Below, piece after piece: positions 22,618-59,429 of a stretch of DNA of 64,000 nucleotides. The stretch's first letter is position 1, and every line of letters starts with the position of its first letter. Below the pieces are notes generated by a model that saw nothing but the letters and a program-made list of their open reading frames with translations, ran no database searches and was not told the DNA's origin. Position numbers and translations under genes: made by a program. Source of the DNA: Macrostomum lignano (lineage: Eukaryota); assembly GCA_002269645.1 (NCBI GenBank), contig NIVC01001803.1, positions 1-64,000 on the forward strand, read 5' to 3'.

Positions 22618-25290
22618 TTATTTTCTATCGCCAAAAAGTGCAAAGGGAAAATCCTTCCGCATACGCTTCCCTCCCGTCAGGAACTCGTGCTCCAGCAGCT
22701 CCTGTGCTGAGCTTCTCTTCCGGTAGTCTTTAGTGGTGCAGCGGCTGTAGAAATCCTGAAGCTCTGCGGACCGGCCGTCTGGCAGGGCGGGGGCGCCCCT
22801 CCTGTCGATCAGCTGGGCCATTTCTAACAGGCTTTTGGCGTTCGCGAACGGCCTCACGCCGGAGGCCATCTGGAAGACCGAGCAGCCGAACGCCCAGATG
22901 TCCGACTCTCTGCTGTACTGCACGCTGTCCGACTCTCCCGCTCCGAGCAGCTCTGGCGCCATGAAGTTCAGAGTGCCTTTGGGTAGCGATTGAGAGGAGG
23001 CTGAGATGTGGCTGATTGACAGCTCCAGCTTGATTGACAGGCCGAAGTCGATCAGCTTGATTCGCGTGTTGTCAGCACAAACAATTATGTTCGAGCAGTT
23101 GATGTCTCTGTGGATCACGGGCGGCTGCCCGCTGTGCAGGTAGAGCAGCGCGCGGCAGATCTGCGAGCGGTCGGTCAGTGAGCAGTCATCATTCATGGAA
23201 ACATGGAACAGGAGACTGCGAGGGAGGAGGTTCGCTCCCTCCCCCGCAGAGACTGGCGCTCCCTCCCCGCATCAAGGATGCACAATGGTCACCTGCTCGC
23301 TGAAGTCTCGAATCGTCAGCTCGTCCAGCGGCTTGCTGTCGATAAGCCTCTCCAAGCTTCGGCCGTCCAGCAGCTCCATGAACACAACGACTGTGGCGGG
23401 CTCCGGCTGAGCGATGTGCAAGAACGTGACGATGTTGGGATGCCGCAGTCGGCACAGGTTTCTCTCGTTCTCGACAGCTCTATGGATCTCTGTGCTCACA
23501 GAGGTTTGGTCATCACCGAGCTTCACAGGCAGTCTGAGAGTCTTGGCAGCGCACGTGACGCCCGTGTCAGTTCGAACTTCGTGAACTTCGCCGAAGCCTC
23601 CGCGGCCGATGAGGCTAACGGCGTCCCAGCGCTCCCGGAACGGTGGGCCTTCGGGTCTGAAGAGAGGCAAATTGAGTTAAGAATTTCTTCGGCAGTTCAA
23701 GAGTATGCTTACATACATGTGTCTGCGCTGAAGAAACTCACGGAGGCTTATCGAAAAATGTCTCGTCTTTGAGCCTGAAACGTGTAGAAATTTGAATCGT
23801 GTTTTGCAAACAATCAAGCTTTCGAAATAATCTTCGTGTTCTTATCTTGGTCTGTGGGATGCTGAGCAATGCCGGTTGGTGATATTGGTACAACATTTTC
23901 ATCAAAACTCACCCTCGAAGCAGCTCAGCCAGTTCGCTCTTTCCTTTCTTTCTGGCCAAATCAAACGCAGTCATGCCATAGCAGTCCTTGAGACTCCAAT
24001 TTGAGCCTGAGTCCAACAGAACCCGACCGACTGCAGCGGCGGTGTGGAGCGGTCCCGAGAAAGCAGCCCACATGAGCGGTGTGAACTCAGCTCGTTCCCT
24101 GGCGTTGGCGGAGGCTCCGGCAGCCAGCAGAGCGGAGGCTGCTACAGAATTCCCGGCCTTGGCTGCCTGGTGCAGGCAATTCTCAGCCAATATATCCGCA
24201 CAGGTGGGGTCACCCAGCTGTACCAGCTGCTCCCACAGAGCCTCATCACTGCACGAGCTGTTTTGAGCTGCCCACATCAATGCGGTTTGACCCCAATCAT
24301 TGGGCAAATCAGAATTACCGCGGGTCGCCGCTCGCCGCAGTCCCGCGAGTCGCCTGCCCTCACCAGCCGCTGCAGTTCCTGTCGATCCGCCTCTTCCTGC
24401 AAAGGCGAGCGGGAAATTTGAGCACAGCTGCTCAGCTGCAGCCGCATCGGCACCGAATATGCCGCTCACCTGGGCTGTCAGGCCGGAGATCCTGCCACCG
24501 ACATCCACAGCCAGGCGCATCTCGCTGCAGCAAAAAGGAAAGTAAAATGCGTTTTCTAATTGAACCCTTCCAGGAAATGTTTCATGATGAACTTTTAAGC
24601 TGTAATTTGGTTCTCTTCTCTCATACAGCCAATATTGTGATTATGAAAATGTGAGCTATTTCTGAACGATTAAGCAGAACTTGACGGACACAGTAGCGAA
24701 CTGCTCACTTACCGCTTGATGTAGCTGGCCAGCTCTGAGTGGCCGCTGAGCCTCGCCAGGTCCGACGCCGTCCGACCCTCGCGATCCTTCAGTCCGAACA
24801 GCTGCAACCTTTTTGAGTTTCCCTGCTTCCAGCAATCACTAAACCTCTGCTGCCTGAGCAGGTGCAGCAGTTGCTTGGCGCATTTCCAGCTTCCAGTCCG
24901 CGCCGCCTCCATCAGCGGAGTGGCGCCGTAATCGTTCAGCAGCCACTTCGCATCGAACGACAGCAGCGTCAGCAGCCGCAGGTGGTCCCGACGGGCTGCC
25001 ATGTGCGCAGCCGTGTCGCCGTTCGCGTCAGCCGCCTTGGGATTCGCGCCCAGCTCAAATAAATACAAGATGCACTTTTCAGTGTGCACGGGAGTCTCAG
25101 GAGCGTCGGCCACCAGCATGAGGACGGTCCGACGAGCTGCATCAGCGCTGGTGACCAGCTGGCGCGTTGCCAGCCGCCGTACCTGTCCGAAGTCACCTCG
25201 GATGACGTCGTTGGCGAGAGTCTGGAGATCGGCTGGTGAGTCTCCGACGCTTGCCCGGTTGCTGGGGTCCGGCTGAGTGAGTTTCTGCAA
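22618..25290 (-). CDS. Ankyrin-repeat plus Ser/Thr kinase gene, copy A (first exon not found; 1-nt deletion in second ANK exon)
   Basis: Exons 24713-25290 (ANK), 24470-24524, 23913-24396 (ANK; 484 nt, 485 needed), 23742-23774 (33-nt micro-exon), 23293-23656 (GRGGFG, CAAK), 22618-23160 (HRDINCSN, DFG, GTLNFMAPE, SDIWAFG). Intron phases match at every junction. Confidence 0.8.
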
Positions 25291-28277
25291 CTGCAATTGA
25301 GGCACCCAAGCTGCACATTCAAAGATTTTTAAGTACGTCTACATCTAATCGTATATGCTTCTAATCATCTAATAAAGTCGATATTAGATAGGTTTCTCTC
25401 GATCTTCAACCCTTAGCATGAATGTCATATTTCTACAGTTTCTCTGATCGTTACAGCTTTAAACAGATGTTAAACAGGCAATTTTATAAAACAATTAAGT
25501 GAAAAGGAGAGCCAAACACACTTTTTTGTACTTCAATATCTTGACATGTTTTCAGCTGATATCTGAGTTAGGCCGAGATATTGGAGTCTAGACTCGATTC
25601 GTCAGTCTTTTTATTTTAAGGTGGTGGTGAGGTGATTACTCTGGATATCGTCAGAATAGATTACTTTAGACTAGGAGTTCAGAAGGTAAGTTTGAGTAGG
25701 AGAGCGATAGGGAGAGAGCGAGTGAAAAAGGAGGAGTAGCAGAAAGAGAAAAAGGAGCGAGAGCTTCCTTCTCACTGAACGCTACCGTTAGATGTGTTCT
25801 AACGCTTGACGCACTGGGATCTTTACTGTGACACAAGCATGTGCTGTGTGTTCCAGATAGAAAAAACCTTCTGATGTTCGCATTAGACTAAAGCATAGAA
25901 CTGGGCATAAGCTAGAAGTAGGATCACTTAAATTTGAGTGAGTTCTTGCAGCTGAAATTGACACACCCTGTGACCTACATCTAAGCATAGAAGTTTTTTG
26001 AGTAGACTTGAATTTACGAGCTACCGGAGTTACTAATCGTCAATTTCTGTGGCTTCAACTTACCGCATAGTCAGGGAACTCAGCAGTTACTTCTTCGTCT
26101 TCCCAAGTGGAATTTGAATCGTCTGAAGAGCTTGACATGGCACAGCGCGGGCTGCTTGTTGATGCAAGATGTGTCAGCAGCTCTGTGTCTGACAGGACAG
26201 AGACCTCCTGTGTTGCTAATTTTATAGCCTTGGCTGCCTGTGGCGGATTGGCTAAAATATTTTTCCCTCTTTCTTTTGCTGTGTACTACTCTGAGCAGTA
26301 TAGGCTGCAGTACTACTTATAATGATGCATATTTTATAACACTTAGTTGCTGTGCTGTGAAACAATAACAAGAGCTCCACTCGACTCACCGGTTTTTTTA
26401 ATTAGTACCAGTAGCAGCTTCTTTCTGCCTCTCCCAGCCTCCATTTTTTCTTCATCTGTACAAGCTCAGATTGAGCAGTAGAAGGTAAAACTGATGCGGC
26501 AGAGATGCTGAGCTCATTCGACAAGGAGAGGCGGGTGCACAACAGGTGAACTTTGTGCAGGGGTTTTTGGACAATGAGGCAAAGCTAATGAGGCCCCATT
26601 GTGTGCAGCCGCTGCATCTCCTTCTGTCTCTCCATTCTCTGTGCAGCGCCCAGCAATGAGTTGAGGGCTGCGGAGCCCGTGCTTGCAGTGGCGGCCTGAG
26701 AACTGGTGCGGTGCTCTGAGTCCTGTGCCAGCTGTGGCTGGGACTGAAACTCAGAATCTCGAGAACAGCAAATATTTTAATATCAAAGATATGTAGTATT
26801 CTATTTACAGAATAATTTAAATTGAAACTAGCAACTCAAAAAATAAATTGACATGACGCTACTGAATTTAATTACTGGATCGGGACTGAGAGTTTAAATA
26901 TGAAAAAAACAGAATTCAGTCTAAAAGTACATCTCTGAAACCAGTTCATTCAACGGACTTGGCTAACTTGACTAACAATTGGATTGCCTGCTCTCGGAGG
27001 CTGCGATCTCAGCCCCATCTCATTCTGCATCATTTAGAGCTGCCAGCTTCCTCACTGTAGAGGCTCCTCACTCAGCTTTCCCGTTCCCAATCAGACTCCA
27101 GCTCAGACTCCGCACACTCCGCCCAATAAACACTTAGCTAAAGAAGCAAAAGTGCAACTGGCTTTGCAATGCAATCTCTGCCTCCGCCCGTCATCTCCGA
27201 GCACAGAAACGAAGGTGCAGTGAGGGGGCAGGTAGGGTGCTCAAGCACAATGCAGAGTCTCCATTGTGTAAGGCTGGGGCTGCAACTCATTCGGAAGCAG
27301 CCGCCACTGCAGCCTCAGACAGGTCAGGTGTGCGCTGCTCATCCTGCAGCCTCATCGCTATGAGCATCGGCAAGAAGTGGAAACTCAGTGGCTGCTCAGG
27401 GCGCACAGCTCGCGCCTCGCTGCTCAGAGGGAGGGCGGCTGCCCCCCCCCCCAGCTTGAGCCGCCCCTCCAGCATCATCTCATTCTACATCATTTAGAGC
27501 TGCCAGCCTCCTCACTGAAAAGGCTCTGAGCAGCTGATTGTGTCTCCGCACTGACCGCCTTCTGCTCTCATGAAATGCTGCTTTCTATCTCAAATTTGCA
27601 TTGCCGGGCTGTCTGCCACTTAGTAAATAAATTTTGAAACTTTTATTGCTGTAGCTCGTAAATTTAATATTTTTTTTATTTTTACATTAAATTAAAGTGC
27701 AGCAGAGTCATTGGATCATGTTTATAGTTTCATCTAGTTTTATAGTTTTTAGTTTCATACTTTACATTTTTATTCTACACAAAAAGTTTTTTTGTTTATA
27801 ATACTGGCAAAGATTTTAGTAGTAGTATATCAATCATTAGTTTAAACATGCATCATATTAATTTAATAAAATTTTACAAATTCGCGTCATAAAGTACCTT
27901 GATATCGGCCTATTTTTATATAATGCACTGGTACTTGTTACCCGCACTGTGTTTAGATGCATTTTTATGTAGAGACAAGCTGTTGAAACCCGCGGATTTT
28001 GAACCCAGTGAATTCCAATACCCGAAACTATTTTTGCATATATTCTGGAATCTGAGGCCATACTCAAACAAAAACTTGTTAAAAGTTAGTAGGATAGAGG
28101 TAAACATAAAAAAGAGTTCATTCGTGTAAAATTAGGATTTGAGGCAAACATGGATATTGTTGGCTGGGGTGCTGCGGAGAATGTCGGGCAATGTCTGTCT
28201 GACTCTAAAACATGTAATGGCAAACTCTGGCCTCTGCCTGACTCTCCCTACGTACCTTGGATCCTTTGAAAAATCTA

Positions 28278-29962: not shown

Positions 29963-30690
29963 GGCTGGGACTGGGGCTTGGACTGGAGCTGGGGCTGGGA
30001 CTGTAGCTGGGGCTGGGGCTGGGGCTGGAGCTGGAGCTGGGGCTGGGACTGTAGCTGGGGCTGGGGCTGGAGCTGGAGCTGGGGCTGGGACTGTAGCTGG
30101 GGCTGGGGCTGGAGCTGGGGCTGGGACTGGAGCTGGGGCTGGGGCTGGAGCTGAGGCTGGGACTGGAGCTGGGGCTGGGACTGGGGCTTGGACTGGAGCT
30201 GGGGCTGGGACTGGAGCTGGGGCTGGGGCTGGGGCTGGAGCTGGAGCTGGGGCTGGGACTGTAGCTGGGGCTGGGGCTGGAGCTGGGGCTGGGACTGGAG
30301 CTGGGGCTGGGGTTGGAGCTGAGGCTGGGACTGGAGCTGGGGCTGGGGCTGGGGCTGGGAGTGGAGCTGGGGCTGGGACTGAAGCTAGGGCTGGGACTGG
30401 GGCTGGAGCTGGTGCTGGGACTGGAGCTGGAGCTGGGACTGGGGCTGGAGCTGGGACTGGAGCTGGGGCTGGGACTGGAGCTGGGGCTGGGACTGAGGCT
30501 GGAGCTGGGGCTGGAGCTGGGGCTGGAGCTGGGGCTGGAGCTGGGGCTGGAGCTGGGGCTGGAGCTGGGGCTGGAGCTGGGGCTGGAGCTGGGGCTGGAG
30601 CTGGGGCTGGAGCTGGGGCTGGGATTTGGACTGGGGCTGGTGCTGGGAATGGAGCTGGGGCTGGAGCTGGGGCTGGGACTGGAGACTGGG
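29963..30690. repeat. Hexamer satellite GG(G/A)GCT / GGGACT
   Basis: About 120 hexamers with higher-order variants. Confidence 0.95.
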
Positions 30691-34026: not shown

Positions 34027-34995
34027 TTAAAACCATCTCGGCTTAGCTCGTAGCGTATACGAGCCAGGCTTTTTCGTCAGGAACTCGTGCTCCAGCAACT
34101 GCTGCGCTGAGTTTCTCTCGCTGCGGGTCTTGGCGGTGCAGCGGCTGTAGAAGTCCCTCAGCTCTGCGGACCGGCCGTCCGGCAATGCGGGCGCGCCCCT
34201 CCTGTCAAGATATTGGGCCATTTCCCAGAAGCTTTTGAATCTGGAGAACGGTCTGGCACCGGACGCCATCTGGAAGACCAAGCAGCCGAATGCCCAGATG
34301 TCCGACTCTCTGCTGCTGCTGCATTGCATGCTGTCAAAGGTCCCAATTCCGAGCAGCTCCGGCGCCAAGAAGTTCAGAGTGCCTTTGGGTGACTGAGTGG
34401 AGGCTGAGATGTGGCTGACTGACTGCTCCAGCTTGATTGACAGACCGAAGTCGATCAGCTTGATTCGCGTGTTGTCAGCACAAACAATTATGTTGGAGCA
34501 GTTGATGTCTCTGTGGATCACGGGCGGCTGTCGGCAGTGCAGGTAGAGCAGCGCGCGGCAGATCTGCGAGCGGTCGGTCAGTGAGCAGTCATCATTCATT
34601 GGAAAATGGAACAGGAGCATCAAGGATGCACAATGCTCACCTGCTCGCTGAAGTCTCGAATCTTTGGCTCGTCCAGCGGCTTGTTGTTGATAAACCTCTC
34701 CAAGCTCCGGCCGTCCAGCAGCTCCATGAACACAACGACTGTGGCGGGCTCCGTCTGAGCGATGTGCAAGAACCTGACGATGTTGGGATGCCGCAGTCGG
34801 CACAGGTTTTTCTCGCTCTCAACAGCTTTATCGATATTCTTCATTTTCGTCTCCTTCTGATCGCCGAGCTGCACAGGCAGTCTGAGAGTCTTGGCGGCGC
34901 ACCTGATGCCTCTGTCAGTGACAACTTCCTGGATGTCACCAAAAAATCCCCTGGCAACAAAGCGAATGGAGTCCCAGCTGTCCTTGAAAACGGAG
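34027..34995 (-). CDS. Kinase module B2, no ANK exons of its own, divergent Gly-rich loop
   Basis: Exons 34641-34995 (RFVARGFFGDIQEV...CAAK) and 34027-34563 (HRDINCSN, DFG, FLAPE); same intron position as its paralogs. Confidence 0.8.
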
Positions 34996-35382
34996 CTGTT
35001 GGAACAATTTGGAAAGCGAGTCAGAAAGCGTTGAGCCGCTTATCAGAATTTTTGGCATCGCCTGACAGAAAGGCTAAAATAAGGAGATGCACGGGAGCCT
35101 CAGCAGATGGAGGGATTGGTTGGATTTCATATTCAGTAAAACTCAGCTGCTTATAATTTGCAGCAACTCCCTCGAACTGTTTTTGAGTCTGAGCAGGGCT
35201 TCTGCTTTATCAAAGAAATTGAGCTCAATTCTATTACTCTTAGATTCAAGCTGGCGCTTCGGTGCCCACTGCTCAAAGTAGACGGCGCATCTTTAGCGTG
35301 AGCACAGGGAGCCGCTTGACTACTGATAGAAAAATGTTACACTGGTCTCCCCTCAGCATGAGCATCATATCGCACAGGTATC

Positions 35383-38300
35383 TCAGGCTAGCCGAATTAC
35401 TGTAAATTTGTACCTCACGATAAGAAACTCGTGCCCCATCAGCTCCAGAGCGGATTTTCTGCTTTTGCGGTCCATGGCGGTGCAGCGGCTGTAGAAGTCC
35501 TGCAGCTCCGCTGAGCAGCCCGTCGGCAGGGTGGGGGCGCCGCTGCTTCTCAGCTTCTCGGGCAGCGTGTGTCGCATTTTGTGTTCAGCGAAGGGCCGCC
35601 TGCCCGAGGCCATCTGGAAGACCGAGCAGCCGAACGCCCAGATGTCCGACTCTCTGCTGTACCGCGGGTTGTCCGACTCCTCCGGTGCCAGCAGCTCCGG
35701 AGCCATGAAGTTCAGAGTGCCTTTGGGTGACTGAGTGGAGGCTGACATGTGGCTGACTGACTGCTCCAGCTTGATTGACAGGCCGAAGTCGATCAGCTTG
35801 ATTCGCGTGTTGTCAGCACAAACAATTATGTTCGAGCAGTTGATGTCTCTGTGGATCACGGGCGGCTGCCGGCTGTGCAGGTAGAGCAGCGCGCGGCAGA
35901 TCTGCGAGCGGTCGGTCAGTGAGCAGTCATCATTCATGGGAAAATGGAACAGGAGCATCAAGGATGCACAATGCTCACCTGCTCGCTGAAGTCTCGAATA
36001 GTCAGCTCGTCCAGCGGCTTGTTGTTGATAAACCTCTCCAAGCTCCGGCCGTCCAGCAGCTCCATGAACACAACGACTATGGCGGGCTCCGGCTGAGCGA
36101 TGTGCAAGAACGTGACGATGTTGGGATGCCGCAGTCGGCACAGGTTTTTCTCGCTCTCGACAGCTCTGTGGATCTCTGTGCTCACAGAGTCCAGCTCATC
36201 ACCGAGCTGCACAGGCAGTCTGAGAGTCTTGGCAGCGCACGTGACGCCCGTGTCAGTTCGAACTTCGTGGACATCGCCGAAGCCTCCGCGGCCGATGAGG
36301 CGAACGACGTCCCAGCGCTCCAGGAACGGGGGGCCTTCGGGTCTGAGGGGATGCGAATTGAGGGATAATTTGCATGCTGTCGCTGTGTGCTGTAGCTGTG
36401 TGCTGTAGCTGTGTGTGCTGTCGCTGTGTGCTGTAGCTGTGTGTTCTGTAGCTGTGTGCTGTAGCTGTGTGTGCTGTAGCTGTGTGCTGTAGCTGTATGT
36501 GCTGTAGCTGTGTGTGCTGTAGCTGTGTGTGCTGTAGCTGTGTGTGCTGTAGCTGTGTGTGCTGTAGCTGTGTGTGCTGTATCTGTGTGTGCTGTAGCTG
36601 TATGTGCTGTAGCTGTGTGCTGTAGCTGTGTGTGCTGTAGCTGTATGTGCTGTAGCTGTGTGCTGTAGCTGTATGTGCTGTAGCTGTGTGCTGTAGCTGT
36701 GTGTGCTGTAGCTGTGTGTGCTGTAGCTGTGTGCTGTAGCTGTGTGTGCTGTAGCTGTGTGCTGTAGCTGTGTGTGCTGTAGCTGTGTGTGCTGTAGCTG
36801 TGTGTGCTGTATCTGTGTGTGCTGTAGCTGTATGTGCTGTAGCTGTGTGCTGTAGCTGTGTGTGCTGTAGCTGTGTGTGCTGTAGCTGTGTGCTGTAGCT
36901 GTGTGTGCTGTAGCTGTGTGCGCTGTAGCTGTGTGTGCTGTAGCTGTGTGTGCTGTAGCTGTGTGTGCTGTAGCTGTGTGTGCTGTATCTGTGTGTGCTG
37001 TAGCTGTATGTGCTGTAGCTGTGTGCTGTAGCTGTGTGTGCTGTAGCTGTGTGTGCTGTAGCTGTGTGCTGTAGCTGTGTGTGCTGTAGCTGTATGTGCT
37101 GTAGCTGTGTGCTGTAGCTGTGTGTGCTGTAGCTGTGTGTGCTGTAGCTGTGTGCTGTAGCTGTGTGTGCTGTAGCTGTGTGCTGTAGCTGTGTGTGCTG
37201 TAGCTGTGTGTGCTGTAGCTGTGTGTGCTGTAGCTGTGTGTGCTGTATCTGTGTGTGCTGTAGCTGTATGTGCTGTAGCTGTGTGCTGTAGCTGTGTGTG
37301 CTGTAGCTGTGTGTGCTGTAGCTGTGTGCTGTAGCTGTGTGTGCTGTAGCTGTGTGCGCTGTAGCTGTGTGTGCTGTAGCTGTGTGTGCTGTAGCTGTGT
37401 GTGCTGTAGCTGTGTGTGCTGTATCTGTGTGTGCTGTAGCTGTATGTGCTGTAGCTGTGTGCTGTAGCTGTGTGTGCTGTAGCTGTGTGTGCTGTAGCTG
37501 TGTGCTGTAGCTGTGTGTGCTGTAGCTGTGTGCGCTGTAGCTGTGTGTGCTGTAGCTGTGTGTGCTGTAGCTGTGTGTGCTGTAGCTGTGTGTGCTGTAT
37601 CTGTGTGTGCTGTAGCTGTATGTGCTGTAGCTGTGTGCTGTAGCTGTGTGTGCTGTAGCTGTGTGCGCTGTAGCTGTGTGTGCTGTAGCTGTGTGCGCTG
37701 TAGCTGTGTGCTGTAGCTGTGTGTGCTGTAGCTGTGTGTGTTGTAGCTGTGTGTGCTGTAGCTGTGTGCGGTACTCATTGATGCTAATCGAAGTAGCCCT
37801 CTCTTTCAAATCTGAAACATTTTGACCATGAATTTTTTTAGATTTTTTGGATCCTAAAAATACTTTAATACTAAAAGTTAAATTAATTCATACATATTAA
37901 AACATCCAATGTATCAATACAATTAATTTTTTACTAATATTACTTGCAAGATTTGTTCTGTTTTAAATTCTGACTTCCATTTCTTCTTTTATTTTGGACT
38001 CAGCAAAATGCTTGCTGGTGTCTCACAGCTCGCAGGCAGCTGAACATTAATATTCAACTGGCAATCTGCAGTCAAACTGCACTGCAAACTCCCTCAATGC
38101 AGCTCAGTCAGTCCTTGCTGCCCATTTAAACTACAAAAATGTAAAAATGCCCACTCAGAGCAACTGCAGTCAGCTGCTCAAAATTCAATCATAAATTATT
38201 ACAGTATAGTTTTTATCAATGATAAATCAAAGTCAGAGAGACATTCTCAGTCGACATCGAAACTCACCCACGCGGCAGCTCAGCCAGTTCGCTTTTCCAC

Positions 38301-40069
38301 CCAGCAGCCAGAGCAGTCCTGCCGCCTCTGGCCTTCAGGCTCCCATCCGCCACTGAGTCAAGCGATTTCCACCGATTCCCGGCATTGTAGGAGGCTCCAG
38401 CAGCCAGCAGAGCGGAGGCTGCGGCAGAATTGCCAGCACTGGCTGCATGGTGCAGACAACTGGCAGCTACTATATCCACACAGGTGGGGTCACCCAGCTG
38501 CACCAGCTGCTCCCACAGAGCCTCATCACCGCACGTGCAGTTCCGAGCTGCATGCATCAACGCGGTGCGACCCCATTTGTCAGGAAGGTCGCAGCTGCCG
38601 CGGGTCGCCGCTCGCCGCAGCCCCGCCCAGTCGCCCGCCTCGGCCAGCCGCTGCAGTTTGTGTCGATCCGCCTCCTCCTGCAAAGGCAAGCGGGAAATTT
38701 GAGCACAGCTGCTCAGCTGCAGCCGCATCGGCACCGCAGATGCCGCTCACCTGGGCTGTCAGGCCGCAGATATCGCCATGTGCATCCAAAATTAGCCGCA
38801 TCTCCCTGCAACAGCAGCAAATTTGCGATTTTCTCAAATCCGAAAACTACGATTGCCAAAAACGTCTGTACAATATAATTTTTATGATAAATTTAGTAAA
38901 AACAAATTCCTTAATTATTTGAGCTGCTCGCAGATGGAGTTTCCAAGAGGACTGCAGCAGCTCTGCAACAATCAGCATTGGCGAGAGCGTATCCGACTTC
39001 TCACATGCAGCTCATTTTCCATTTCTGCAGCATGAGTTTCCTTCCATCTCACAATGTCTCACAAAGCATTCACGTACAGCCTCCCAGTTCTCCATCTGCA
39101 GCTCAACCCACACACTCTCACTGCACACCGAGGCCCTACAGCTTCCATTCTCGACTGAGATCAACCGGCACCCTATTGACTGGGAGGCAGCCAGCCAATC
39201 ACAGCTCTCGCCCATCAAGCGGTTAGCCAGAGACAAGATCAGCTGACTGGCTCTGATTGGCTGGCCTGAGACTGCAGCTCTGGCCACCCCAGCCGAATGC
39301 TGCAAAACTTGATGAACACAGCAGCGAACTGCTCACTCACCGCTCGATGTAGCTGGCCAGCTCTGGGTAGCCGCTGCGCCTCGCCAGGTCCGACGCAGAA
39401 CGACGCTCGCGATTCTTCAGTCCGATCAGCCGCGACCTTTTCGAGTTTTCACGATTCTCATACTCGTTGAACCCGTCCTGCCTGAGCAGGTGCAGTAGGT
39501 GCTTGACGCATTTCCAGCTTCCAGTCCGCGCCGCCTCAATCAGCGGAGTGGCGCCGTTGTCGTTCCGCAGCCACTTCGCATCGAACGACTGCAGCGTCAG
39601 CAGCCGCAGGTGGTCCCGCCGGGCTGCCAGGTGCGCAGCCGTGTCGCCATTCGCGTCAGCCGCCTTGGGGTTCGCGCCCAGCTCAAATAAGTACAAGATG
39701 CACTTTTCAGTGTGCACGGGAGTCTCAGGAGCGTCGGCCACCAGCATGAGGACGGTCCGACGAGCTGCATCAGCGCTGGTGACCAGCTTGCGCGTTGCCA
39801 GCCGCCGCACCTGTCCGAAGTCACCTCGGATGACGTCGTGAGCGAGAGTGTGGAGATCGGCTGGTGAGTCTCCGACTCTTGCCCGGTTTCTGGGGTCCGG
39901 CTGAGTGAGTTTCTGCAACTGCAATCGAGGCACCCAAGCTGCACATTCAAACATGTGAGTGAGTTGCTGCAACTGCATTTGAGAATAAAATATTACTAAG
40001 CTTGCATTTGTTTAACTTAACTCTACTTACTTTTTCGTCAGGAAATGGTAATATCCATGGCTCCATCAT
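35383..40069 (-). CDS. Ankyrin-repeat plus Ser/Thr kinase gene, copy B (frame intact)
   Basis: Exons 40031-40069 (MMEPWILPFPDEK, inferred start), 39341-39972 (or 39918), 38751-38805, 38268-38677, 35979-36342, 35383-35901. All phases are compatible and no frameshift is needed. Confidence 0.82.
36376..37769. repeat. 13/15-bp GCTGTAGCTGTGT(GT) satellite in the ANK-kinase intron of copy B
   Basis: About 1.4 kb; the same unit occurs at 50880-51066 and 59470-59507. Confidence 0.96.
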
Positions 40070-49863: not shown

Positions 49864-52800
49864 TCATTTCCATGCACCGAAAAACGAGCTAAAAAATCCC
49901 AGCTGCAGCTTCCTGTCCGTCAGGAACTCGTGCTCCAGCAGCTCCTGTGCCGATTTTCTTCTGCGGTCCTTGGCGGTGCAGCGGCTGTGGAAGTCCCTCA
50001 GCTCTGCGGATCGGCCGTCGGGCAGGACGGGGGCGCCCCTCCTCTCAATCAGCTGGGCCATTCCTAAAAAGTTCCTGGCGTCTGCAAACGGCCTCGCGCC
50101 AGACACCATCTGATATACCGAGCAGCCGAAAGCCCAGATGTCTGACTCTCTGCTGTACTGCACGCTGTCCGACTCTCCTGCTCCGAGCAGCTCTGGCGCC
50201 ATGAAGTTCAGAGTGCCTTTGGGTGACTGAGTTGAGGTTAAGATGTGGCTGACTGACTGCTCCAGCTTGATTGACAGGCCGAAGTCGATCAGCTTGATTC
50301 GCGTGTTGTCAGCACAAACAATTATGTTGGAGCAGTTGATGTCTCTGTGGATCACGGGCGGCTGCCGGCTGTGCAGGTAGAGCAGCGCGCGGCAGATCTG
50401 CGAGCGGTCGGTCAGTGAGCAGTCATCATTCATGGGAGCATGTAACAGGAGCATCAAGGATGCACAATGCTCACCTGCTTGCTGAAGTCTCGAATCGTCA
50501 CCTCGTCGAGCGGCTTTTTGTCGATAAACCTCTCCAAGCTCCGGCCGTTCAGCAGCTCCATGAACACAACGACTGTGGCGGGCTCCGGCTGAGCGATGTG
50601 CAAGAACCTGACGATGTTGGTATGCCGCAGTCGGCACAGGTTTCTTTCGCTCTCGACAGCTCTGTGGATCTCTGAGCTCATAGAGAGCAGCTCATCACCG
50701 AGCTGCACAGGCAGTCTGAGAGTCTTGGCAGCGCACGTGACGCCCGTGTCAGTTCGAACTTCGTGGACTTCGCCGAAGCCTCCGCGGCCGATGAGACGAA
50801 CGACGTCCCAGCGCTCCAGGAACGGGGGGCCTTCGGGTCTGAGGGGATGCGAATTGAGGCAGTTAACGTTAGTTTGCATGCTGTAGCTGTGTGTGCTGTA
50901 GCTGTGTGTTGTAGTTGAGTGTGCTGTAGCTGTGTGCTGTAGTTGAGTGTGCTGTAGCTGTGTGTGCTGTAGCTGTGTGCTGTAGCTGTGTATGCTGTAG
51001 CTGTGTGTGCTGTAGCTGTGTGCTGTAGCTGTGTGCTGTAGCTGTGTATGCTGTAGCTGTGTGTGCGGTAGTTACGAGTATGTGCTGTGGGAACTGAAAG
51101 ATGCTGAAGGAACTTACGGCAGTTCCAGAGGCTCGTCGAAGTAAATCCTGCCGTCGTACCTAAATAGGCGATGCACAGTCTGTTAGGGAATTCAGAGAGT
51201 CCACGCTTTTTGGTTTATTGTATCACTTTATCAATTTTCATTTGTTTTAAGTGTCGAGCAGGCAAAGTTGATCTTTTTGCAATAATACAGAAGAGGACCA
51301 CAAAAGGAACTATCCATGTTATTTTGAACTTAAACAGCAAAATGGTGGCTGGTTTTTCAGAGCTCGCAGGAAACTAAACCTTATTATTTAAATTGCAATC
51401 GGGAGTCAAACTGCACTGCAAACTCCTGAATCCCACTCAGTCATTTTAAACTAAATAGGCGTGCAGGAATGTTTTTTGAGCACGCCAATTGAGAAAATTG
51501 GAATTGAGAAATGCGCAAGGTTTGCTTATAACAAAGATTTTTTTAATTTTTATTTTAGTTATAAAAAGATTTTTTAAAATCTAAAATACTGTTGAAACTT
51601 CCGGATTTTTATCCTGCTGAATTCCAATCATCTGAACTATTTTTAATACTTTCTTGAGTCTAAAGTCATACTAAAAAAAAAGTGTTTTTAGCTAATATGG
51701 AGGTAAACAAAAGTGAAGTAAATTCGTGTTAAATTAAGATTTAAAGCCTTCTGTCCTCTCCTAAATCTTCTTCTCGCTCTCCTCTATCCTTACTCTTGTC
51801 TTCAGTCTCCTTTTTCGCGGAATAACTTTTGGATTTTATAATGTTTTCACATACATGTATAGTTTCTAGGATTCAAAATCAGCAGATTTATACTACGCTG
51901 GTTACAACAGTATGTTCAATCAAAAATTACAGCACCTTGTTTATCAATGATAAATCAAAGTCAGAGAGACATTCTCAAGTCGCCATGGAAACTCACCCAC
52001 GCAGCAGCTCAGCCAGTCCGCTGTTTCCCTTTTGTGTGGCCAAATCCAGCGCAGTCCTGCCGTCTCTGTCCTTCAGGCTCCAATCCGCCCCTAAGTCCAG
52101 CAGAACCCGACCGACTGCGGCGGCGGTGGCGGGGGGCGCAAAGAAGGCTGCCAGCATGAGGGGCGTGGAGTGACAGTCATTCCTGGCATTGGCGGAAGCT
52201 CCGGCAGCCAGCAGATCAAAGGCTGCGGCAAAATTGCCAGAACGTGCTGCCGAGTGCAGGCAAGTGGTAGAAGATATATCCGCAGAGGTAGGGTCACCCA
52301 GCTGCACCAGCTGCTTCCACAGAGCCTCCTCACTGCACGAGCTGTTCTGAGCAGCCCACATCAACGCAGTGTGACTCCAACTGTCAGGCAGGTCGCAGCT
52401 GTTGCGAGTCGCTGCTCGCCGCAGCCCCCCCCCCCCGAGTTGCCCGAATCGGCCAGCCGCTGCAGTTCCTGTCGATCTGCCTCCTCCTGCAATGGCAAGT
52501 GAGAAATTTGAGCACAGCTGCTCAGCTGCAGCCGCATCGGCACCTCAGATGTCACTCACCTGAGCTGTCAGGCCGGAGATCCTGCCACGTGCATTCACAA
52601 TTAGCCGCATCTCCCTGCAGCAGCAAAAATTAGAAGCAAATCCGCAATTTTCTTGACTCCAACAATTACGAGCGTACGATTGTCAAATAAAACTTTAAGT
52701 TGCGCAATACTATTTCCATGATAAATTTAGTAAGCAAAAATCCCTAACTTTCTGAGCTGCTCGCAGATGCACTTTCCAAGAGGCCTGCAGTAGCTCTGCA

Positions 52801-53926
52801 ACAATCAGCATTGGCGAGAGCGCATCCGACGTCTCACACTCCCTCTCATTTTCCATTTCTGCAGCATGAGTTTCCTTCCATCTTACAATAACAAAGCACT
52901 CACGCACAGCCTCCCAGTTCTCCATCTGCAGCACAACCCACACACTATCACTGCACACCAAGGCCCTACAGCTTCCATTCTCGACTGAGATCAACCGGCA
53001 CCCCATTGGCTGGGAGGCAGCCAGCCAATCACAGCTCTCGCCCATCAAGCAGTCAGCCAGAGAGAAGCTCAGCTGACTGGCTCTGATTGGCTGGCCTGAG
53101 ACTGCAGCTCTGGCCACCCCAGCCGAATGCTGCAAAACTTGCTGGACACAGCAGCGAACTGCTCACTCACCGGTCGATGTAGCTGGCCAGCTCTGAGTGG
53201 CCGCTGAGCCTCGCCAGGTCCGACGCCTTCCGACCCTCGCGATTCTTCAGTTCGAGCAGCCGCGACCTCTTCGAGTTTTCGTGCTTCCCGCACTCATTGA
53301 ACCTTTCCTGCCTGAGCAGGTGCAGTAGGTGCTTGGCGCATTTCCAGCTTCCAGTCCGCGCCGCCTCCATCAGCGGAGTGGCGCCGTTGTCGTTCAGCAG
53401 CCACTTCGCATTGAACGATAGCAGCGTTAGCAGCCGCAGGTGGTCCCGCCGGGCTGCCAGGTGCGCAGCCGTGTCGCCATTCGCGTCAGCCGCCTTGGGG
53501 TTCGCGCCCAGCTCAAATAAGTACAAGATGCACTTTTCAGTGTGCACGGGAGTCTCAGGAGCGTCGGCCACCAGCATGAAGACGGTCCGACGAGCTGCAT
53601 CAGCGCTGGTGACCAGCTGGCGCGTTGCCAGCCGCCGCACCTGTCCGAAGTCTCCTTGGATGACGTCCTGGGCGAGATTGTGAAGATCGGCTGGTGAGTC
53701 TCCGACGCTTGTCCGGTTGGTGGGGTCCGGCAGAGTCAGCTGAATCATGCTTTGCTCAAAAAGAAGTTCGTCAGCGACTTTAGTCAGCTGCAATTGAGGC
53801 ACCCAAGCTGCACAATCAAACATGGGAGCCAGTTCTTGCAACTGCAATTAAGCCTCCAATATAAATATGCTTCAATTTTATCTCTTTAACTGTACTTACC
53901 CGTTTGACAACATCCTCTCTCGTCAT
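49864..53926 (-). CDS. Ankyrin-repeat plus Ser/Thr kinase gene, copy C (frame broken at a G12 run)
   Basis: Exons 53900-53926 (MTREDVVKR, inferred start), 53171-53841 (or 53787), 52560-52614, 51997-52486 (490 nt, off-phase at C12 run 52425-52436), 50475-50838, 49864-50397. Confidence 0.8.
50880..51066. repeat. GCTGTAGCTGTGT(GT) satellite in the ANK-kinase intron of copy C
   Basis: Same unit and same position as in copy B. Confidence 0.93.
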
Positions 53927-54669
53927 AAGATGATCGTCATAAGATGATCTCAGTCGCTCTGCCATGGCTGCAAGCTCAGTCACAGGTGTCTCAACTCAGC
54001 CCGAGAGTCCGGCAGGGCAGCGGCCGCCTCTGCAGCAGATTTTATTGGCCTTGAAGCAGCTGCAGCGAATTCCTTCTCACCCTGCCTGCTCAGATTGCGG
54101 CTGCTTTTGTTGGCTTGTGCGGCCGCCTCTGCCCAGTCTTCTGCCTCTCCCATTGGTTCTGAGCTCTGAGTGTGCTGTATTTGGATTTGTGCAATGGGTG
54201 CGGTTGGGCGTAATACAATGTGGACCTGGTGACGCAACTGAGAAGAATTTTATTGCAAATTGTTATTTCAAGATGGTGAGGAACCTGCGCTGACGGTTGA
54301 AGGTTGTTGAGATCTGGTTTTTAGGCAGCGAATTGAATGAGGTTCGAATATAAATGGCTTTCGAAAATGAAAAATTAAAGGATTTTACTAGTAGCGAGTA
54401 GTAGTATGTTGGAAAGTTTTAGTCATTTTTAGTGATAATACAGATAGAATTAATAGGATTATAAAAGCTGTGGAGGATTCTGTCCTGATAGTGACTGATT
54501 GGGAATCAAGCAAGTTGCACATGCATTGGGTTGAAGACCTTCTTTGGGAATAATCGGTATAGAAGTACATGTAATGGGATTATGGAGCAAGTGAAAACAC
54601 AGCCCCAGAATTCCCTCTGCCTACATTGTGACATCTGGAACACTGCTGAAGTCGTTAGTCACAGATGAA

Positions 54670-55260
54670 GCAAAACCAGGTCCTTGCTCGCTGGTTGTTG
54701 GCTTTGACGATTTCGGCAAACTCGGCACTCGAAGGTGAATTGAGGTCCATTGTTCGGCATCAGGACCTTTGCAAGGCCAAGGCGAGCGAAGATCTCCTGT
54801 CGACAGTTGATCATTGCAGCTGCACAGTGCTGCGCATTATTTGCATCTTCCTCTTTGAACTGGGGAGACAGCGAGCCTTAATTGGCATGATTCTCCATTG
54901 GCTGGAACTCAAGTGAGTAGCCGTAGCTCGATGGTGAACCTGCGGCTATAGAGTGAAACCGGTGCAGCTCGAAGACGATTGCCAGCAGCAATTCTTGTCG
55001 AGCTGCGCTGAGGCTGCGGCTGGCGAAGGCCACGTACGGCGCGGTGCTGGTCGCCGATTCGGTGGGACAGCACCACACCGACACCGTAGGATATGAGCAC
55101 TGCGGTTGAACTGAGAGCCCGCCCTCCGAGTTTTAATGGTGACGAATGTCATGCTCTCGTCGTCCAGCAGAAGCTGCACTCGGTCGTTAGAGAAGTAGAA
55201 CTGAGTCCACTTGCTTGGCAAACAGGTGGGGTCCTCGGTGAGGGACAGCGGCTACTGCTC
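54670..55260 (-). mobile_element. Decayed Ty3/gypsy pol fragment (RNase H region)
   Basis: VAFASRSLSAA...AIVFELHRFH; nucleotide similarity to 42780-43000 and 43590-43700. Confidence 0.7.
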
Positions 55261-55749
55261 AGCCTGGCACGCTGGGTTCAAGGTCTGCGTAAAGTCGCTG
55301 TCTCATAAAGACACTTGGAGTAGATTTTGAGACACAAGTTGAGTTGTCAAAAGATGCTTAAGCAGCTGACTTAAGCATGCAATTGTCGACATTAAAGACA
55401 CTATACTCGTACTGTAGTTGAATTTTCAAAGAATTGGGAATTTTCGAAGACATTTTACATGTGTAAGAACGAGGGCGTCATGAACAGGTAAGCTGTGTCC
55501 GGTTCCATTCTAAAACTCGGAAATTTGCGATTTGAAATTTATGTTTTGGTTCTTAGAATTTGGGTTTCACCGGGCTCGCTTTCAGTCCAAAATGTTCTAG
55601 AAATCCATGAATTTTCTGACTTGTTTCCAGTCCAGGTGGTTCCAGGGGTTATATTTGGGCTTGTCGGAGACGAGCAATAGTAATTTGAAGCCGGGGGAGT
55701 CACCGGGTATTAAGTTGGCAACCGGTTTTAAGCCTCTTGGCTCTTCATC

Positions 55750-56600
55750 AGAATAAAAATGTATCTAAGGTGCACTTGAACTAGAAAACCTAAGGACAAA
55801 GAATGATTGAAATAACAACTAACAAGATTAATATTCCTGAATGGCCAATAACTTGAGTATAATAGTATTAATGCGTCATCCTGCGGCTCGTTATTGCGGC
55901 CGTCGAATTTGCCTTGCTTGGTAAGCGGCTCATCAAAAACCCGGCCTCTCCCACCTCCGGCAGGAGCGATGGAGAGCGGCGCTGAGCCCAGCGTCGCAAT
56001 TGCTGAATCCAGCAGACACGCCAGTGCCTTCCGCCCATCGGTTGCCGCTGCCAGTCCTTGCGTTGGAGCTGAAGTGGCGCAGCAGAACTCGGTCGCTGAC
56101 TTGGAGCTCGAGCGCATGCGGCTGCTGCTCCACCAACCGCTCTTGACGCTGCCGCACACTGCTCGTCAGCGATGACATCAGCAGGTACAGCCGGCTGCGC
56201 AGTCTGTGGCCGGTGAGCAGCTGGCTGGGGAGCCTCGCGCCTCGCCAGTGAACGATTGCGGCGTGCTGCGGTAGGACATCAGCACTCGCTACAGGGCTGC
56301 CGTTGAGTGCCCGCTCCTGAAAAGATGTCGGTTGTTGCCGGGTGGAACGGGAATGGGAAAATGTAGCGGATGCAGTTGCACCTCGCTGAACTGCGCGGAG
56401 ATAAACTAGGAAGACTGCGACTCATGGAAAATACATCGCAGAGTCGCTCGATGATGACAGCAGACGTTTTGCTCTGCACCTGCTGCACCTCTGGCCACAC
56501 ACTAAAGGCTTCCACGATGACCAGGTACGTGTGACCGTCACGGGGCCTGCGAAGTCAAGGTGCAGCCTCGCCCAGGGTTCGGAAGGATCCCCCAATTTCA
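55750..56600 (-). mobile_element. Decayed Ty3/gypsy integrase fragment
   Basis: PWARLHLDFAGP..HTYLVIVEAFSVWPEV..SKTSAVIIERL...PFHPAT motifs across frameshifts. Confidence 0.78.
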
Positions 56601-56811
56601 TTTTTATAAGCAGTTGAGTTAAGCAAACATGGCAGCCACTCAGTGCTGAGAGTCGGGCAGCTCCGGTATGCTAGAGTCACACATGAGTATATTTGATCAA
56701 TTCGTTACAAAGCTCACAACATAGCGATAGCAGCTGATGGTAAACAGCAAAGAGCCTGAGTACAATTTGGCATTTGAGCAGCATTACTGCTTGAGAGTAA
56801 AATAAATCATA

Positions 56812-58114
56812 CGAGGGGTATTCAATAAGTTTCCGGATGCACGAAGTGGGAATGTTATCTACACAATTTAGCATAGCAGGTATAATAATGTACATTATTT
56901 TTTATTATATTTGTGCAATATTAGACAAATTGACTCTATAAAGCCTGTGCTGCGCACACTAAAAGTTAGCATACCCCTTTAACACGGATAATACACAATG
57001 GAGCTCAACAGAGGCCATTGGAGAGCAATGGTTTATAATAACTACAAAATGGGTTTAAGGCAGCAGGAGAGCTTTGAGAAACTTTAAGCGGCTTTTGTCA
57101 ATGAAGCACCTTCCAGCACTATATTTTTTGAGTGGTTTGCCGAAGTTTCGACGTGGCCAGCGGAGTCTGGATGATGAAGAGTGCAGTGGCTGGCCCACCT
57201 CCGCAGCAAGGAATGAGAATGTTTCTGCTATTCGGGCCATTATTTAGGATGATGCCAGGGTTGACTGTGTCTCAGATAGAGGCCGAAATGGGCATCTCAT
57301 CGGGAGCCATCCGCAAGATACTGCACTCGGGCTCAACCTGAGCAAGGTTTCTGCACGTTGGGTGCCTCATCACCTGACGGAGGAGCAAAGGAGGCTCGGG
57401 TGGCTTGGTGCCATGCCATGCTTGATAGATTTGATGGTGGCCGCTTAAACTCGGTCTGGAAACTCGTCAGTGGTGACGAATCCTGGATCTGTAGTTTTGA
57501 CCCAGAGACCGAGCAGCAGTCGACCCAGTGGACACGAGTTGCAGACGCTCCATCATTGAAGCTGCAGCGAGAGAGCAGCGTGGCAAAGCAGATGGTGGCC
57601 GTTTTTGTGATGAAAGCTGGTCACCTAGCGACCGTGCCACTTGTGCAGCAGCGCACGGTCACCGGCAACTGGTATACCAACTGCTGCCTGCCAGAAGTGC
57701 TGAATTGTCTCTCTAGTTGCCGCCTCAAAGACTCGAGCTCGGGGTGTGCTTCTTCATCACGACAACGCTCCCGCCCACAAGTCCAGGCAAGTGGTCGAAT
57801 TCCTGGCTGGAGAAGGCACTGAAGAGCTCGGCCATCCATCCTACAGCCCAGACCTGACCCCGTGCGACTTCTACGTGTTTCCGCAAACCAAGAGGAAGAT
57901 GTGTGGCAGTCGCTATTTATCGCCAGAAGCTGCAGTCAAGGCCTTCATCAAGCATGTCAGGGGGTGCGAAGTTCAGAGTGGTCCGGCTGTTTCAATAATT
58001 GGTTTGAAGGGATGCAACAGTGCATAAACTCTTCTTGAGAGTGCTTTGAAAAAATATGACTGTCAGTTGCTCTATAACTATTTCAGTCTTTTCACATTCG
58101 GAAACTTATTGAAT
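56812..58114 (+). mobile_element. Mariner (DD34D) transposon, inactive, right TIR truncated
   Basis: TA then CGAGGGGTATTCAATAAGTTTCCG at left; inverted CGGAAACTTATTGAAT at 58099-58114. The broken transposase starts at ATG 56998 and has WVPHHL, GDESW, HHDNAPAH and YSPDLTPCDF, with 34 residues between the last two catalytic Asp. Confidence 0.93.
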
Positions 58115-58427
58115 TCAAAGAGTTTAAGCGCAGTCACAGCCTGTCTGCGGGAAATTCATAAAAAAGTTCTAGGATAAATAAAGTGAAAATCGAGAGAACT
58201 TGAGACAATGAAAATTTAAGTAGACTTTGCCTGAACTTTGAGCAGCTCAATAAAAGATGAAAAATCTATGCCAAAGTACAAATCACAAAGTACGAGTACA
58301 GGTACATACGATGGTGTGTAATTTTCAGCCCTACAAAAACGCTCTAGTGGAAAAAATCTGAAGAATCGAAACGCCAACTGAGGCGCCCTATGAAAAGTTC
58401 CAAAGCCGAGTATTGTAGGCAGGACTG

Positions 58428-59429
58428 TCAAAACTTTGCTCGCTTAGCTCTGTGAGTCTGACTTGGCGGGTCATTTCTAAAAATTTTTTTCGCATTTTCA
58501 GTCTGGATTCTTTCGCTTGTCAGAAACTCGTGCTCCAGCAGCTCCTGTGCTGAGTTTCTCTTCCTGCTGTCCTTGGCGGTGCAGCCGCTGTAGAAATCCG
58601 TCAGCTCTGCGGACCGGCCGCTCCTGCCAAGATGCTTAAACAACTCACGGGCGCTTCTAGCATCGACGAAAGGCTTGGTGCCCGAGACAATCTGGAAGAC
58701 CGAGCAGCCGAACGCCCAGATGTCCGACTCTCTGCTGTGCTGCACGCTGTTCGACTCTACCAACTCTCCCGCTCCGAGCAGCTCAGGCGCCATGAAGTTC
58801 AGAGAGCTTTTGGGTGTCTCTGGGAAAGATGCGTGGCGGATGACTATCTGCTCCAGCTTGATTGACAGGCCGAAGTCGATCAGCTTCATTCGCGTGTTGT
58901 CAGCACAAACAATCATGTTGGAGCAGTTGATGTCTCTGTGGATCACGGGCGGCTGCCGGCTGTGCAGGTAGAGCAGCGCGCGGCAGATCTGGGAGCGGTC
59001 GGTCAGTGAGCAGTCATCATTCTGGGAACATGGAACAGGAGCATCAAGGATGCACAATGCTCACCTGCTCGCTGAAGTCTCGAATCGTCAGCTCGTCCAG
59101 CGGCTTTTTGTCGATAAACCTCTCCAAGCTTCGGCCGTCTAGCAGCTGCATGAACACAACGACTGTGTTGGGCTCCGGCTGAGCGATGTGCAAGAACCTG
59201 ACGATGTTGGTATGCCGCAGTCGGCACAGGTTTCTCTCGATCTCGACAGCTCTGTGGATCTCTGTGCTCACAGAGGTTTGCTCTTCACCGAGCTGCACAG
59301 GCAGTCTGAGAGTCTTGGTAGCGCACGTGACGCCCGTGTCAGTTCGAACTTCGTGGACTTCGCCGAAGCCTTCGCGGCCGATAAGGCGAACGGCGTCCCA
59401 GCGCTCCAGGAACGGGGGGGCCTTCGGGT
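58428..59429 (-). pseudogene. Kinase module D, lacks ANK exons, +1 frameshift, degenerate activation segment
   Basis: Exons 59065-59429 (365 nt versus 364 in A, B1 and C; G7 at 59414-59420 versus G6 in B1 and C) and 58428-58988 (KSSLNFMAPE; short C-lobe deletion around APALPDG). It may be intact if the G run is an assembly error. Confidence 0.6.

Follow-up and report, generated by a model that had tools for sequence, protein, structure and literature searches.

What kind of gene family lies behind a run of ankyrin-repeat (ANK) and protein-kinase exons on one strand of a flatworm contig? The run occupies 22618-59429 on the minus strand of a 64,000-nucleotide (nt) stretch of the Macrostomum lignano genome (contig NIVC01001803.1, positions 1 to 64,000), which we refer to as a whole as the window. 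An earlier note on this DNA had taken it for a tandem array of ANK-kinase genes and a candidate sensor/effector family. Here we describe three multi-exon ANK-kinase genes (A, B and C) and one kinase-only unit (D) at this locus. They belong to a tandem family that is M. lignano-only in the databases searched, and we think it somewhat probable that its variable ANK face and swappable effector make it a recognition-plus-effector family.

Pfam searches of the open reading frames (ORFs) listed for this interval returned Ank_2 or halves of the Pkinase domain, and tblastn with a model of copy A placed all related segments on the minus strand, at 26108-22621 (A), 39948-34075 (B together with a second kinase, B2), 53757-49876 (C) and 59427-58509 (D). 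The genes follow a general plan in which a start exon, ANK exon 1, a 55-nt exon, ANK exon 2 and a mini-exon of 33 or 42 nt encode an ankyrin module of about eight repeats, followed by one to three two-exon kinase cassettes per gene. All introns are GT-AG. The features of the array are given below, where P0002 and P0021 are M. lignano database proteins.

22618..26138, minus strand: gene A (ANK-kinase); exons 26138-26064, 25290-24713, 24524-24470 (55 nt), 24396-23913, 23774-23742 (33-nt mini-exon), 23656-23293 and 23160-22618.
24338..24351, minus strand: frame break of gene A; GACTCG^CGGG, one G short (about 24346) against P0002, which is in frame there as GDSAGLRR.
34027..40069, minus strand: gene B (ANK-kinase-kinase); exons 40069-40031, 39918-39341, 38805-38751 (55 nt), 38677-38268, 36342-35979, 35901-35414, 34995-34641 and 34563-34027.
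37784..37811, minus strand: remnant of the gene B mini-exon; degenerate, with an in-frame TAG.
38351..38377, minus strand: deletion site in ANK exon 2 of gene B; in frame, about 24 amino acids (aa), with most of repeat 7 gone; P0021 has the same.
49864..53965, minus strand: gene C (ANK-kinase); exons 53965-53900, 53787-53171, 52614-52560 (55 nt), 52486-51997, 51159-51118 (42-nt mini-exon YDGRIYFDEPLELP), 50838-50475 and 50397-49864.
52425..52436, minus strand: frame break of gene C; a 12-G homopolymer in ANK exon 2, where 10 or 13 G would keep the frame.
58428..59429, minus strand: unit D (kinase only); N-lobe exon 59429-59065 (365 nt) and C-lobe exon 58988-58428.

The splice junctions that the earlier note had proposed (24713/24524, 23913/23774/23656, 38268/36342 and 51997/50838) are each canonical GT-AG and keep the frame, and its 55-nt exon is present in A, B and C at the positions listed. 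Its layout stands for the head-to-tail order of A, B and C and for the kinase-only nature of D, but B2 is not a separate module: it consists of the last two exons of gene B, spliced in frame (donor 35414 to acceptor 34995) to give that gene a second kinase domain, an architecture shared with the M. lignano protein P0001. Of the mini-exons that precede the kinase exons, the note had included the 33-nt one of A but overlooked the 42-nt one of C.

Gene B, with eight exons and an uninterrupted 941-aa ORF, is the sole unit that is intact as assembled. The ANK deletion of B recurs in P0021 and is therefore real, and the degenerate mini-exon of B is presumably skipped in splicing. In an AlphaFold (AF2) model of B the mean predicted local distance difference test score (pLDDT) is 81.6; the ANK domain and the first kinase are confident, and residues 327-364 fall below 50. 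Gene A has seven exons, including an ANK exon 1 of 578 nt and a kinase N-lobe exon of 364 nt, and an N terminus similar to that of P0003; it would encode about 711 aa once its frame is restored, and gene C about 721 aa. The ORF of A is open across its break only if the 73-nt intron 24469-24397 is retained. A 734-aa model that reads through this intron was dropped, as paralog proteins show the intron spliced; its open frame is a chance product of intron retention together with a 1-nt deletion. Unit D is broken by a 7-C run at 59420-59414 (+1; the other copies have 6 C) and lacks 7 aa in its C-lobe exon, and a search of 54200-64000, up to the end of the window, found no ANK exon or mini-exon upstream of it. 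A, C and D thus each carry one single-base frame break and are otherwise free of stops over more than 2 kb. Assembly error may account for the breaks, given their G/C-rich surroundings and, for two of them, a long homopolymer run.

Two further observations concern the gene models. The breaks of A and C are independent yet hit one and the same codon, in the GDSAGLRR site with which ANK exon 2 starts, where an error-prone or mutation-prone sequence context could be common to both. Upstream of the start exons, a stretch that is about 84% conserved occurs in B (40255-40070, minus strand), in C (54152-53970, minus strand) and at the genomic locus of P0001 (L001, about 9750-10000). It opens with an ATG-led short ORF (MGEAE[S/D]WAEA...) in a frame different from that of the main ATG, and it could be a 5′ untranslated region with an upstream ORF or an alternative first exon.

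The sole close database relatives of the window genes are M. lignano proteins, which are 76-100% identical and have a common exon plan. P0021 is 100% identical to gene B over ANK exon 1, the 55-nt exon, ANK exon 2 (deletion included) and the start of the kinase. In P0002, a chimeric prediction, the counterpart of A is joined to a neighbouring class-C G-protein-coupled receptor (GPCR) gene; P0002 and the window are colinear over gene A and on through that neighbour, and the GPCR exons of P0002 are mostly 98-100% identical to those in the window. For C, D and the kinase domains of B, the protein-database comparison gave no near-identical annotated protein. Identity to the window genes is 76-81% for P0001, an ANK-kinase-kinase of 985 aa, and for the ANK-kinases P0004-P0006. 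Such paralogs, among them BOX15_Mlig034440g1 (P0001), Mlig015152g1 (P0004), Mlig017273g1, Mlig013011g1 and UniRef entries of the A0A1I8... series, are annotated merely as 'hypothetical protein' or 'Protein kinase domain-containing protein'.

The paralog proteins have the same junctions as the window genes (marked here by a slash), namely '...GLTAQ/EEADR...' past the 55-nt exon, '...AELLRG/YDGKIYFDEPLALP/PEGPPF...' around the mini-exon and '...HEFFIV/SPVFRDSWD...' between kinases. The GenBank BOX15_Mlig models were derived from RNA-seq and transcriptome assemblies (PMC5730564). Since such models of the 76-81%-identical paralogs place ANK and kinase in one transcript, and since clean models could be built across all the exons, the earlier note's joining of ANK and kinase exons into single genes appears sound; the case that the two parts share one transcript in the window genes is indirect but good.

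The kinase exons are clear members of the protein-kinase superfamily: the C-lobe exons score 95-116 bits and the N-lobe exon 44 bits against PF00069 (Pkinase; cut-off 31.7). In a sequence search of the PDB, ASK1/MAP3K5 came first (E = 1e-28), followed by MEKK2, TNIK, PAK and MKK7, and Foldseek with the AF2 model of B placed TNIK, MAP4K4, MEK1, ASK1 and WNK on top, with about 26-29% identity in the fold alignments. Judged by these matches, the kinase is STE/MAP3K-like, as the earlier note had supposed. That note had also seen no KEN domain; Pfam likewise gave only Ank and Pkinase, with no match to Ribonuc_2-5A, and the window proteins finish 15-30 aa after the kinase. The domain is not an orthologue of a named MAP3K (ASK or MEKK) on the data at hand, in which kinases from outside Macrostomum are at most about 36% identical and ANK repeats are the only other domains.

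The window kinases keep the G-loop, the AxK lysine, the alpha-C Glu, HRD, DFG and APE. A, the first kinase of B and C have GRGGFG, CAAK, HRD, DFG and APE; the G-loop reads ARGFFG in the second kinase of B and GREGFG in D. All five window domains and their close paralogs have the catalytic loop HRDINCSN, in which Asn replaces the catalytic Lys of Ser/Thr kinases (HRDxKxxN). In ANK-kinases of M. lignano that are more distant, the Lys is still there (HRDIKCSN or HRDIKSSN), and its loss is therefore a derived trait of the window subfamily. LIMK (DLNSHN) is active despite such a catalytic loop. Variation of the kinase among paralogs (in C-lobe exons such as 50397-49864) is concentrated in four spots, the beta3-alphaC loop, part of the activation loop, the helix alpha-G region (ADARNFLGMAQLIERRG) and the C-terminal tail; in some kinases alpha-G is a docking site for a substrate or regulator.

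The family extends well beyond the window. Its ANK module is common to about 38 clusters at 90% identity, spread over many contigs, and an exhaustive HMMER search with the kinase domain gave about 39 clusters (50% identity) above about 38% identity. Across the ANK-module clusters and the kinase clusters above 38% identity, the 33 named representatives are all M. lignano. For the kinase, we looked up 30 cluster representatives, 21 of them at 37% identity or more and nine at 26-36%. The first group were all M. lignano except one Logan contig, and none in the second was named Macrostomum. The next relatives of the kinase, 30-36% identical, come from oomycetes, Mortierella fungi, plants (a MAP3K) and birds (PAK3-like). 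By contrast, a protein-database search with an exon of the neighbouring GPCR gene found ordinary relatives, 45-60% identical, across invertebrates. In the databases searched, the multigene family is restricted to M. lignano, and the idea of a lineage-specific, expanded family is borne out.

Does the family vary where an ankyrin protein would bind? We aligned the ANK modules of 20 paralogs, indexed the eight repeats on their conserved Thr-6 and calculated Shannon entropy for each position. The canonical target-contact positions of ANK repeats, which we take to be 2, 3, 5, 13, 14 and 33 (the set randomised in libraries of designed ankyrin repeat proteins, DARPins), had a mean entropy of 1.15 bits, compared with 0.42 for the framework (Mann-Whitney p = 5e-6). 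The signal comes entirely from repeats 5-8, which are encoded by ANK exon 2; repeats 1-4 are nearly invariant at all positions. Within repeats 5-8, the entropies at positions 2, 3, 5, 13 and 14 are the highest as a group (2.76, 2.38, 2.09, 2.13 and 1.65 bits), which agrees with the variable ANK surface foreseen in the earlier note. Position 10 reaches 1.66 bits, position 33 just 0.48, the loop positions 26-32 at most 0.5 and almost all others at most 0.9.

The same contrast appears at the codon level. In A, C and two further M. lignano loci (L001, and L002, the locus of the protein P0027), the proportion of non-synonymous differences (pN) is 0.34-0.43 at binding-position codons and 0.12-0.20 in the framework (p <= 0.001 in all six pairs). 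In each of the six pairs, pN at binding positions also equals or exceeds the proportion of synonymous differences (pS) in the framework, significantly so in two of them. The predicted binding face is therefore evolving at least as fast as neutral and the scaffold is constrained, a pattern that is suggestive of diversifying selection on the putative binding face of repeats 5-8.

The window copies differ by 8-30%, and their introns, indels and minisatellite lengths differ as well. The earlier note had found ANK exon 1 and the kinase core very similar between copies and other parts variable. The pattern holds numerically, and it extends to synonymous divergence (dS), as follows for each exon together with the ratio of non-synonymous to synonymous divergence (dN/dS).

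ANK exon 1: dS between window copies 0.10-0.13; dN/dS 0.6-0.9.
ANK exon 2: dS between window copies 0.22-0.56; dN/dS 0.35-1.0.
Kinase N-lobe exon (first kinase domains of A, B, C and D): dS between window copies 0.05-0.11; dN/dS 0.6-1.1.
Kinase C-lobe exon: dS between window copies 0.29-0.40; dN/dS 0.33-0.74.

The cause is thus largely a mosaic of dS and not stronger constraint. That ANK exon 1 and the kinase core are kept by stronger purifying selection was considered and set aside, as dS is low there too and dN/dS is 0.6-1.1. The similar exons are also alike at silent sites, which suggests that gene conversion has homogenised ANK exon 1 and the N-lobe exon. P0002 fits this picture: its identity to A is 96-98% over the ANK exons but only 87.6% over the N-lobe exon, where it is nearer to B. 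The kinase cassette (364 + 488 = 852 nt) consists of two exons with phases 2-2, a symmetry that explains its tandem duplication in frame; B has two cassettes and L001 three. At L001 the three tandem cassettes (20065-23671) include two with identical C-lobe exons, and the annotated protein takes in only two kinase domains. As judged from these comparisons, tandem duplication, gene conversion and exon shuffling are the routes by which the family evolves.

The ANK module is not confined to kinase genes. A set of M. lignano proteins (P0024, P0027, P0030 and P0032-34) has the ANK module of the window genes at the N terminus and a caspase domain at the C terminus; for ANK-caspase genes such as those of P0024 and P0027, aa identity to the window genes is 80-86% over ANK exon 1 and 63-70% over exon 2. 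At L002, ANK exon 1 is 91% identical in nucleotides to the window copies, the 55-nt exon and ANK exon 2 are also present, and a 42-nt mini-exon (YEGKVYFNEPLALP) is directly followed by a (CACACAGCTACAG)n minisatellite. The same minisatellite is found at the corresponding place in L001 and at these positions in the window:

36384..37773: (CACACAGCTACAG)n minisatellite, about 95 copies, in the intron of B from the mini-exon remnant to the first kinase exon.
50878..51071: (CACACAGCTACAG)n minisatellite between the mini-exon and the first kinase exon of C.
About 59470-59505: remnant of the 13-mer, before D.

At no further site within the window does (CACACAGCTACAG)n occur, and it is within (CACACAGCTACAG)n that the similarity between caspase-type and kinase-type genes stops. 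Pfam found no caspase domain (Peptidase_C14) in the window; the caspase part of P0027 gives only weak, short local alignments there (24-44% identity), in the kinase exons. Effectors have thus been swapped between ANK-kinase and ANK-caspase genes, whose proteins share the ANK module alone. More distant paralogs of the kinase include Kinase-ANK-Caspase and ANK-Kinase-Caspase proteins.

A 2024 study reported ANK-caspases from platyhelminths, along with one M. lignano caspase whose pro-domain is kinase-like; it did not report the ANK-kinase family, and it described ANK-caspases as essentially confined to parasitic flatworms (PMC11463336). The free-living M. lignano has several ANK-caspases as well as Kinase-ANK-Caspase and ANK-Kinase-Caspase proteins (P0024, P0027, P0030, P0032-34, P0135, P0137 and P0180). 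At the catalytic cysteine, P0027 and P0038 have QAGRG instead of QACRG and therefore may be pseudo-caspases; P0033, P0034, P0137 and P0180 keep QACRG.

How do these genes compare with known proteins? ASK1/MAP3K5 and other STE kinases (MEKK2, TNIK/MAP4K, PAK and MEK) are the best matches in sequence and fold, and GTLNFMAPE of the window resembles GTLQYMAPE of ASK1. The window genes nevertheless lack the domains that flank the kinase in ASK1, have HRDINCSN rather than HRDIKGDN, carry ANK as the N-terminal regulator and are not orthologous to it. RNase L (ANK, pseudokinase and KEN nuclease) also has an N-terminal ANK domain ahead of a kinase fold, and in that protein the ANK domain binds the activating ligand, but the window proteins have no KEN and RNase L is not among the top matches. 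ILK (ANK and pseudokinase) has the same order, whereas HRD and DFG are intact in the window kinases and ILK is absent from the best matches. In RIPK4 and ANKK1 the order is reversed, with an N-terminal kinase and C-terminal ANK.

The window genes also resemble the platyhelminth ANK-caspases (PMC11463336), whose M. lignano members carry the ANK module, 55-nt exon, 42-nt mini-exon and junction minisatellite of the window genes; the effector there is a caspase (Peptidase_C14) and here a kinase, and the likeness was seen in the M. lignano ANK-caspases. The hypervariable positions of the window family (2, 3, 5, 13 and 14, and also 10) coincide with those randomised in DARPins, although this is a natural, germline-encoded series of paralogs rather than a library, with binding predicted from sequence. 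With invertebrate immune receptor families (NLR-like, VLR-like and FREP-like) the family shares lineage-specific tandem expansion, gene conversion, binding-surface variation and interchangeable effectors, but it has no NACHT, TIR, death-fold, LRR or Ig domain.

We propose that the diversified repeats 5-8 would be the face that meets ligands, and that the constant repeats 1-4 would serve for self-association or for contact with a common partner. The effector, a kinase here and a caspase in paralogs, would be under the control of ligand binding, and the family would be of the recognition-plus-effector type known from innate immunity and regulated cell death. The minisatellite at the junction may be the recombination substrate through which effectors are swapped. 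By analogy, an immune or cell-death role is plausible. The sole new support for the immune or allorecognition role, which the earlier note had raised, is indirect and comes from the paralogs that fuse the same ANK module, or the kinase type, to caspase domains. A more far-reaching version would make the family a home-grown germline ANK recognition system, a functional analogue of NLR- or VLR-type repertoires that is linked directly to kinase signalling and cell death, with constant repeats 1-4, DARPin-like hypervariable repeats 5-8, interchangeable effectors (one to three kinases, a caspase, or a kinase and a caspase) exchanged with the (CACACAGCTACAG)n intron as a hotspot, and gene conversion shuffling the exons; we hold this to be doubtful. 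Several observations weigh against the recognition-plus-effector proposal as a whole. Three of the four units (A, C and D) are frame-broken as assembled and B is without part of its ANK domain; the Lys-to-Asn change in the catalytic loop could mean weak or no kinase activity; and no known immune domain (TIR, death-fold or NACHT) occurs in the window proteins. Exon-wide dN/dS of 0.3-1.0 is compatible with relaxed constraint as well, and the binding-site excess over neutral is significant in just two of six pairs, with NG86 on 24 codons being a crude measure. The link to caspases is one of paralogy and domain fusion, with no demonstrated pathway, and the restriction to M. lignano may be partly due to other Macrostomum proteomes missing from the databases.

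The array might instead consist mostly of decaying, near-neutral duplicates, with variable positions that are no more than the loop residues under the weakest constraint and with no recognition function at the locus. We consider this unlikely. The frame breaks, the 24-aa deletion and dead mini-exon of B, the absence of ANK exons and of 7 C-lobe residues in D, the exon-wide dN/dS of 0.3-1.1 and the lack of near-identical annotated proteins for C, D and the kinase domains of B would all fit such decay. Yet the broken copies, although the copies are 8-30% diverged, hold a single disruption each over more than 2 kb and not one in-frame stop, and every break amounts to a change of one base in a G/C-rich context (12-G, 7-C and CGGCGGG), where long-read assemblies commonly err; at the break site of A, its counterpart P0002, from another assembly, is in frame. 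Moreover, variation is focused on five ANK positions and not on loops generally, and framework pN is two to three times below that of the binding sites. About equally improbable, in our view, is a fast-evolving germline or reproduction kinase family, comparable to testis-specific kinase expansions and driven by sexual selection or conflict in a hermaphrodite instead of by pathogens or non-self. Lineage-specific expansion, tandem arrays and quick evolution of interaction surfaces suit reproductive as well as immune proteins, and M. lignano has many fast-evolving reproduction-biased transcripts; the fusion of the ANK module and the kinase type to caspase domains in paralogs, however, points to cell-death signalling rather than sperm function. 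Finally, the earlier note had allowed that the copies could be haplotigs or the kinase a conserved single-copy gene, collapsed repeats being another artefact to consider, and the M. lignano assembly is indeed redundant, with 180 Mb in blocks at least 95% identical (PMC5730564). But the copies stand in tandem in one contiguous sequence, are 8-30% apart and differ in introns, indels and minisatellite lengths, and are therefore not haplotigs; at least 38 distinct clusters at 90% identity are spread over many contigs. A single-copy orthologue of ILK, RNase L, TNNI3K or ANKK1/RIPK4 fares no better, given the number of clusters, nearest kinases outside Macrostomum that are 30-36% identical, no KEN domain, and best matches in the PDB, by sequence or by fold, that include no chain of ILK, RNase L or TNNI3K. 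Tandem position, divergence, cluster number and kinase relatives together rule these explanations out, and we give them next to no credence.

The remaining content of the window is of a different kind. Its base composition is about 48% G+C, and it is rich in minisatellites. Long regular ones (periods 15-48 nt, 80-98% matches) are both intronic and intergenic, and they yield long spurious ORFs on both strands, for example poly-(PA) and (LAPLV)n, the latter even translated inside the P0002 prediction. The features outside the ANK-kinase genes are:

1148-17690, minus strand: class-C GPCR (metabotropic-glutamate-receptor-like) gene, directly downstream of gene A; 7tm_3 and NCD3G exon at 1148-2701, ANF_receptor start at 17025-17690.
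43283-43726, minus strand: fragment of a long-terminal-repeat retrotransposon with reverse transcriptase/RNase H (PF17917, 1.5e-11), between gene copies.
57358-58027, plus strand: weak DDE_3 (Tc1/mariner-like) transposase fragment (2.5e-4), between gene copies.
59506..60048: minisatellite of a 15-mer, unlike (CACACAGCTACAG)n, immediately upstream of D.
8874-9418, 12769-13146, 29963-30690, 31175-32059, 32577-33147, 44353-44711, 46018-47072 and 59506-60048: the long regular minisatellites.

We found no publication on the ANK-kinase family, its arrays, the dual-kinase gene, the variable surface, the junction minisatellite or the caspase link, and a recent M. lignano expression paper held nothing specific on the family under ankyrin, caspase or immune terms. 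The genes themselves were already in public databases, labelled as hypothetical; the DARPin-like character of the variable positions and the module shared with caspases are likewise absent from the papers that we found.

Flatworms lack several canonical components of extrinsic apoptosis, and platyhelminth ANK-caspases have no known activator (PMC11463336). Should the family prove to be just a fast-decaying cluster of duplicates, the result would be an ordinary one. The locus is in addition a clean natural case of modular exon shuffling, with a phase-symmetric kinase cassette and a minisatellite at the module junction. Transgenesis and RNA interference exist for M. lignano, so that the candidates are directly testable. 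One ankyrin module, reused ahead of kinases, caspases or both and varying on the ankyrin binding groove, is a concrete, testable candidate for coupling recognition to signalling or cell death in a basal flatworm.

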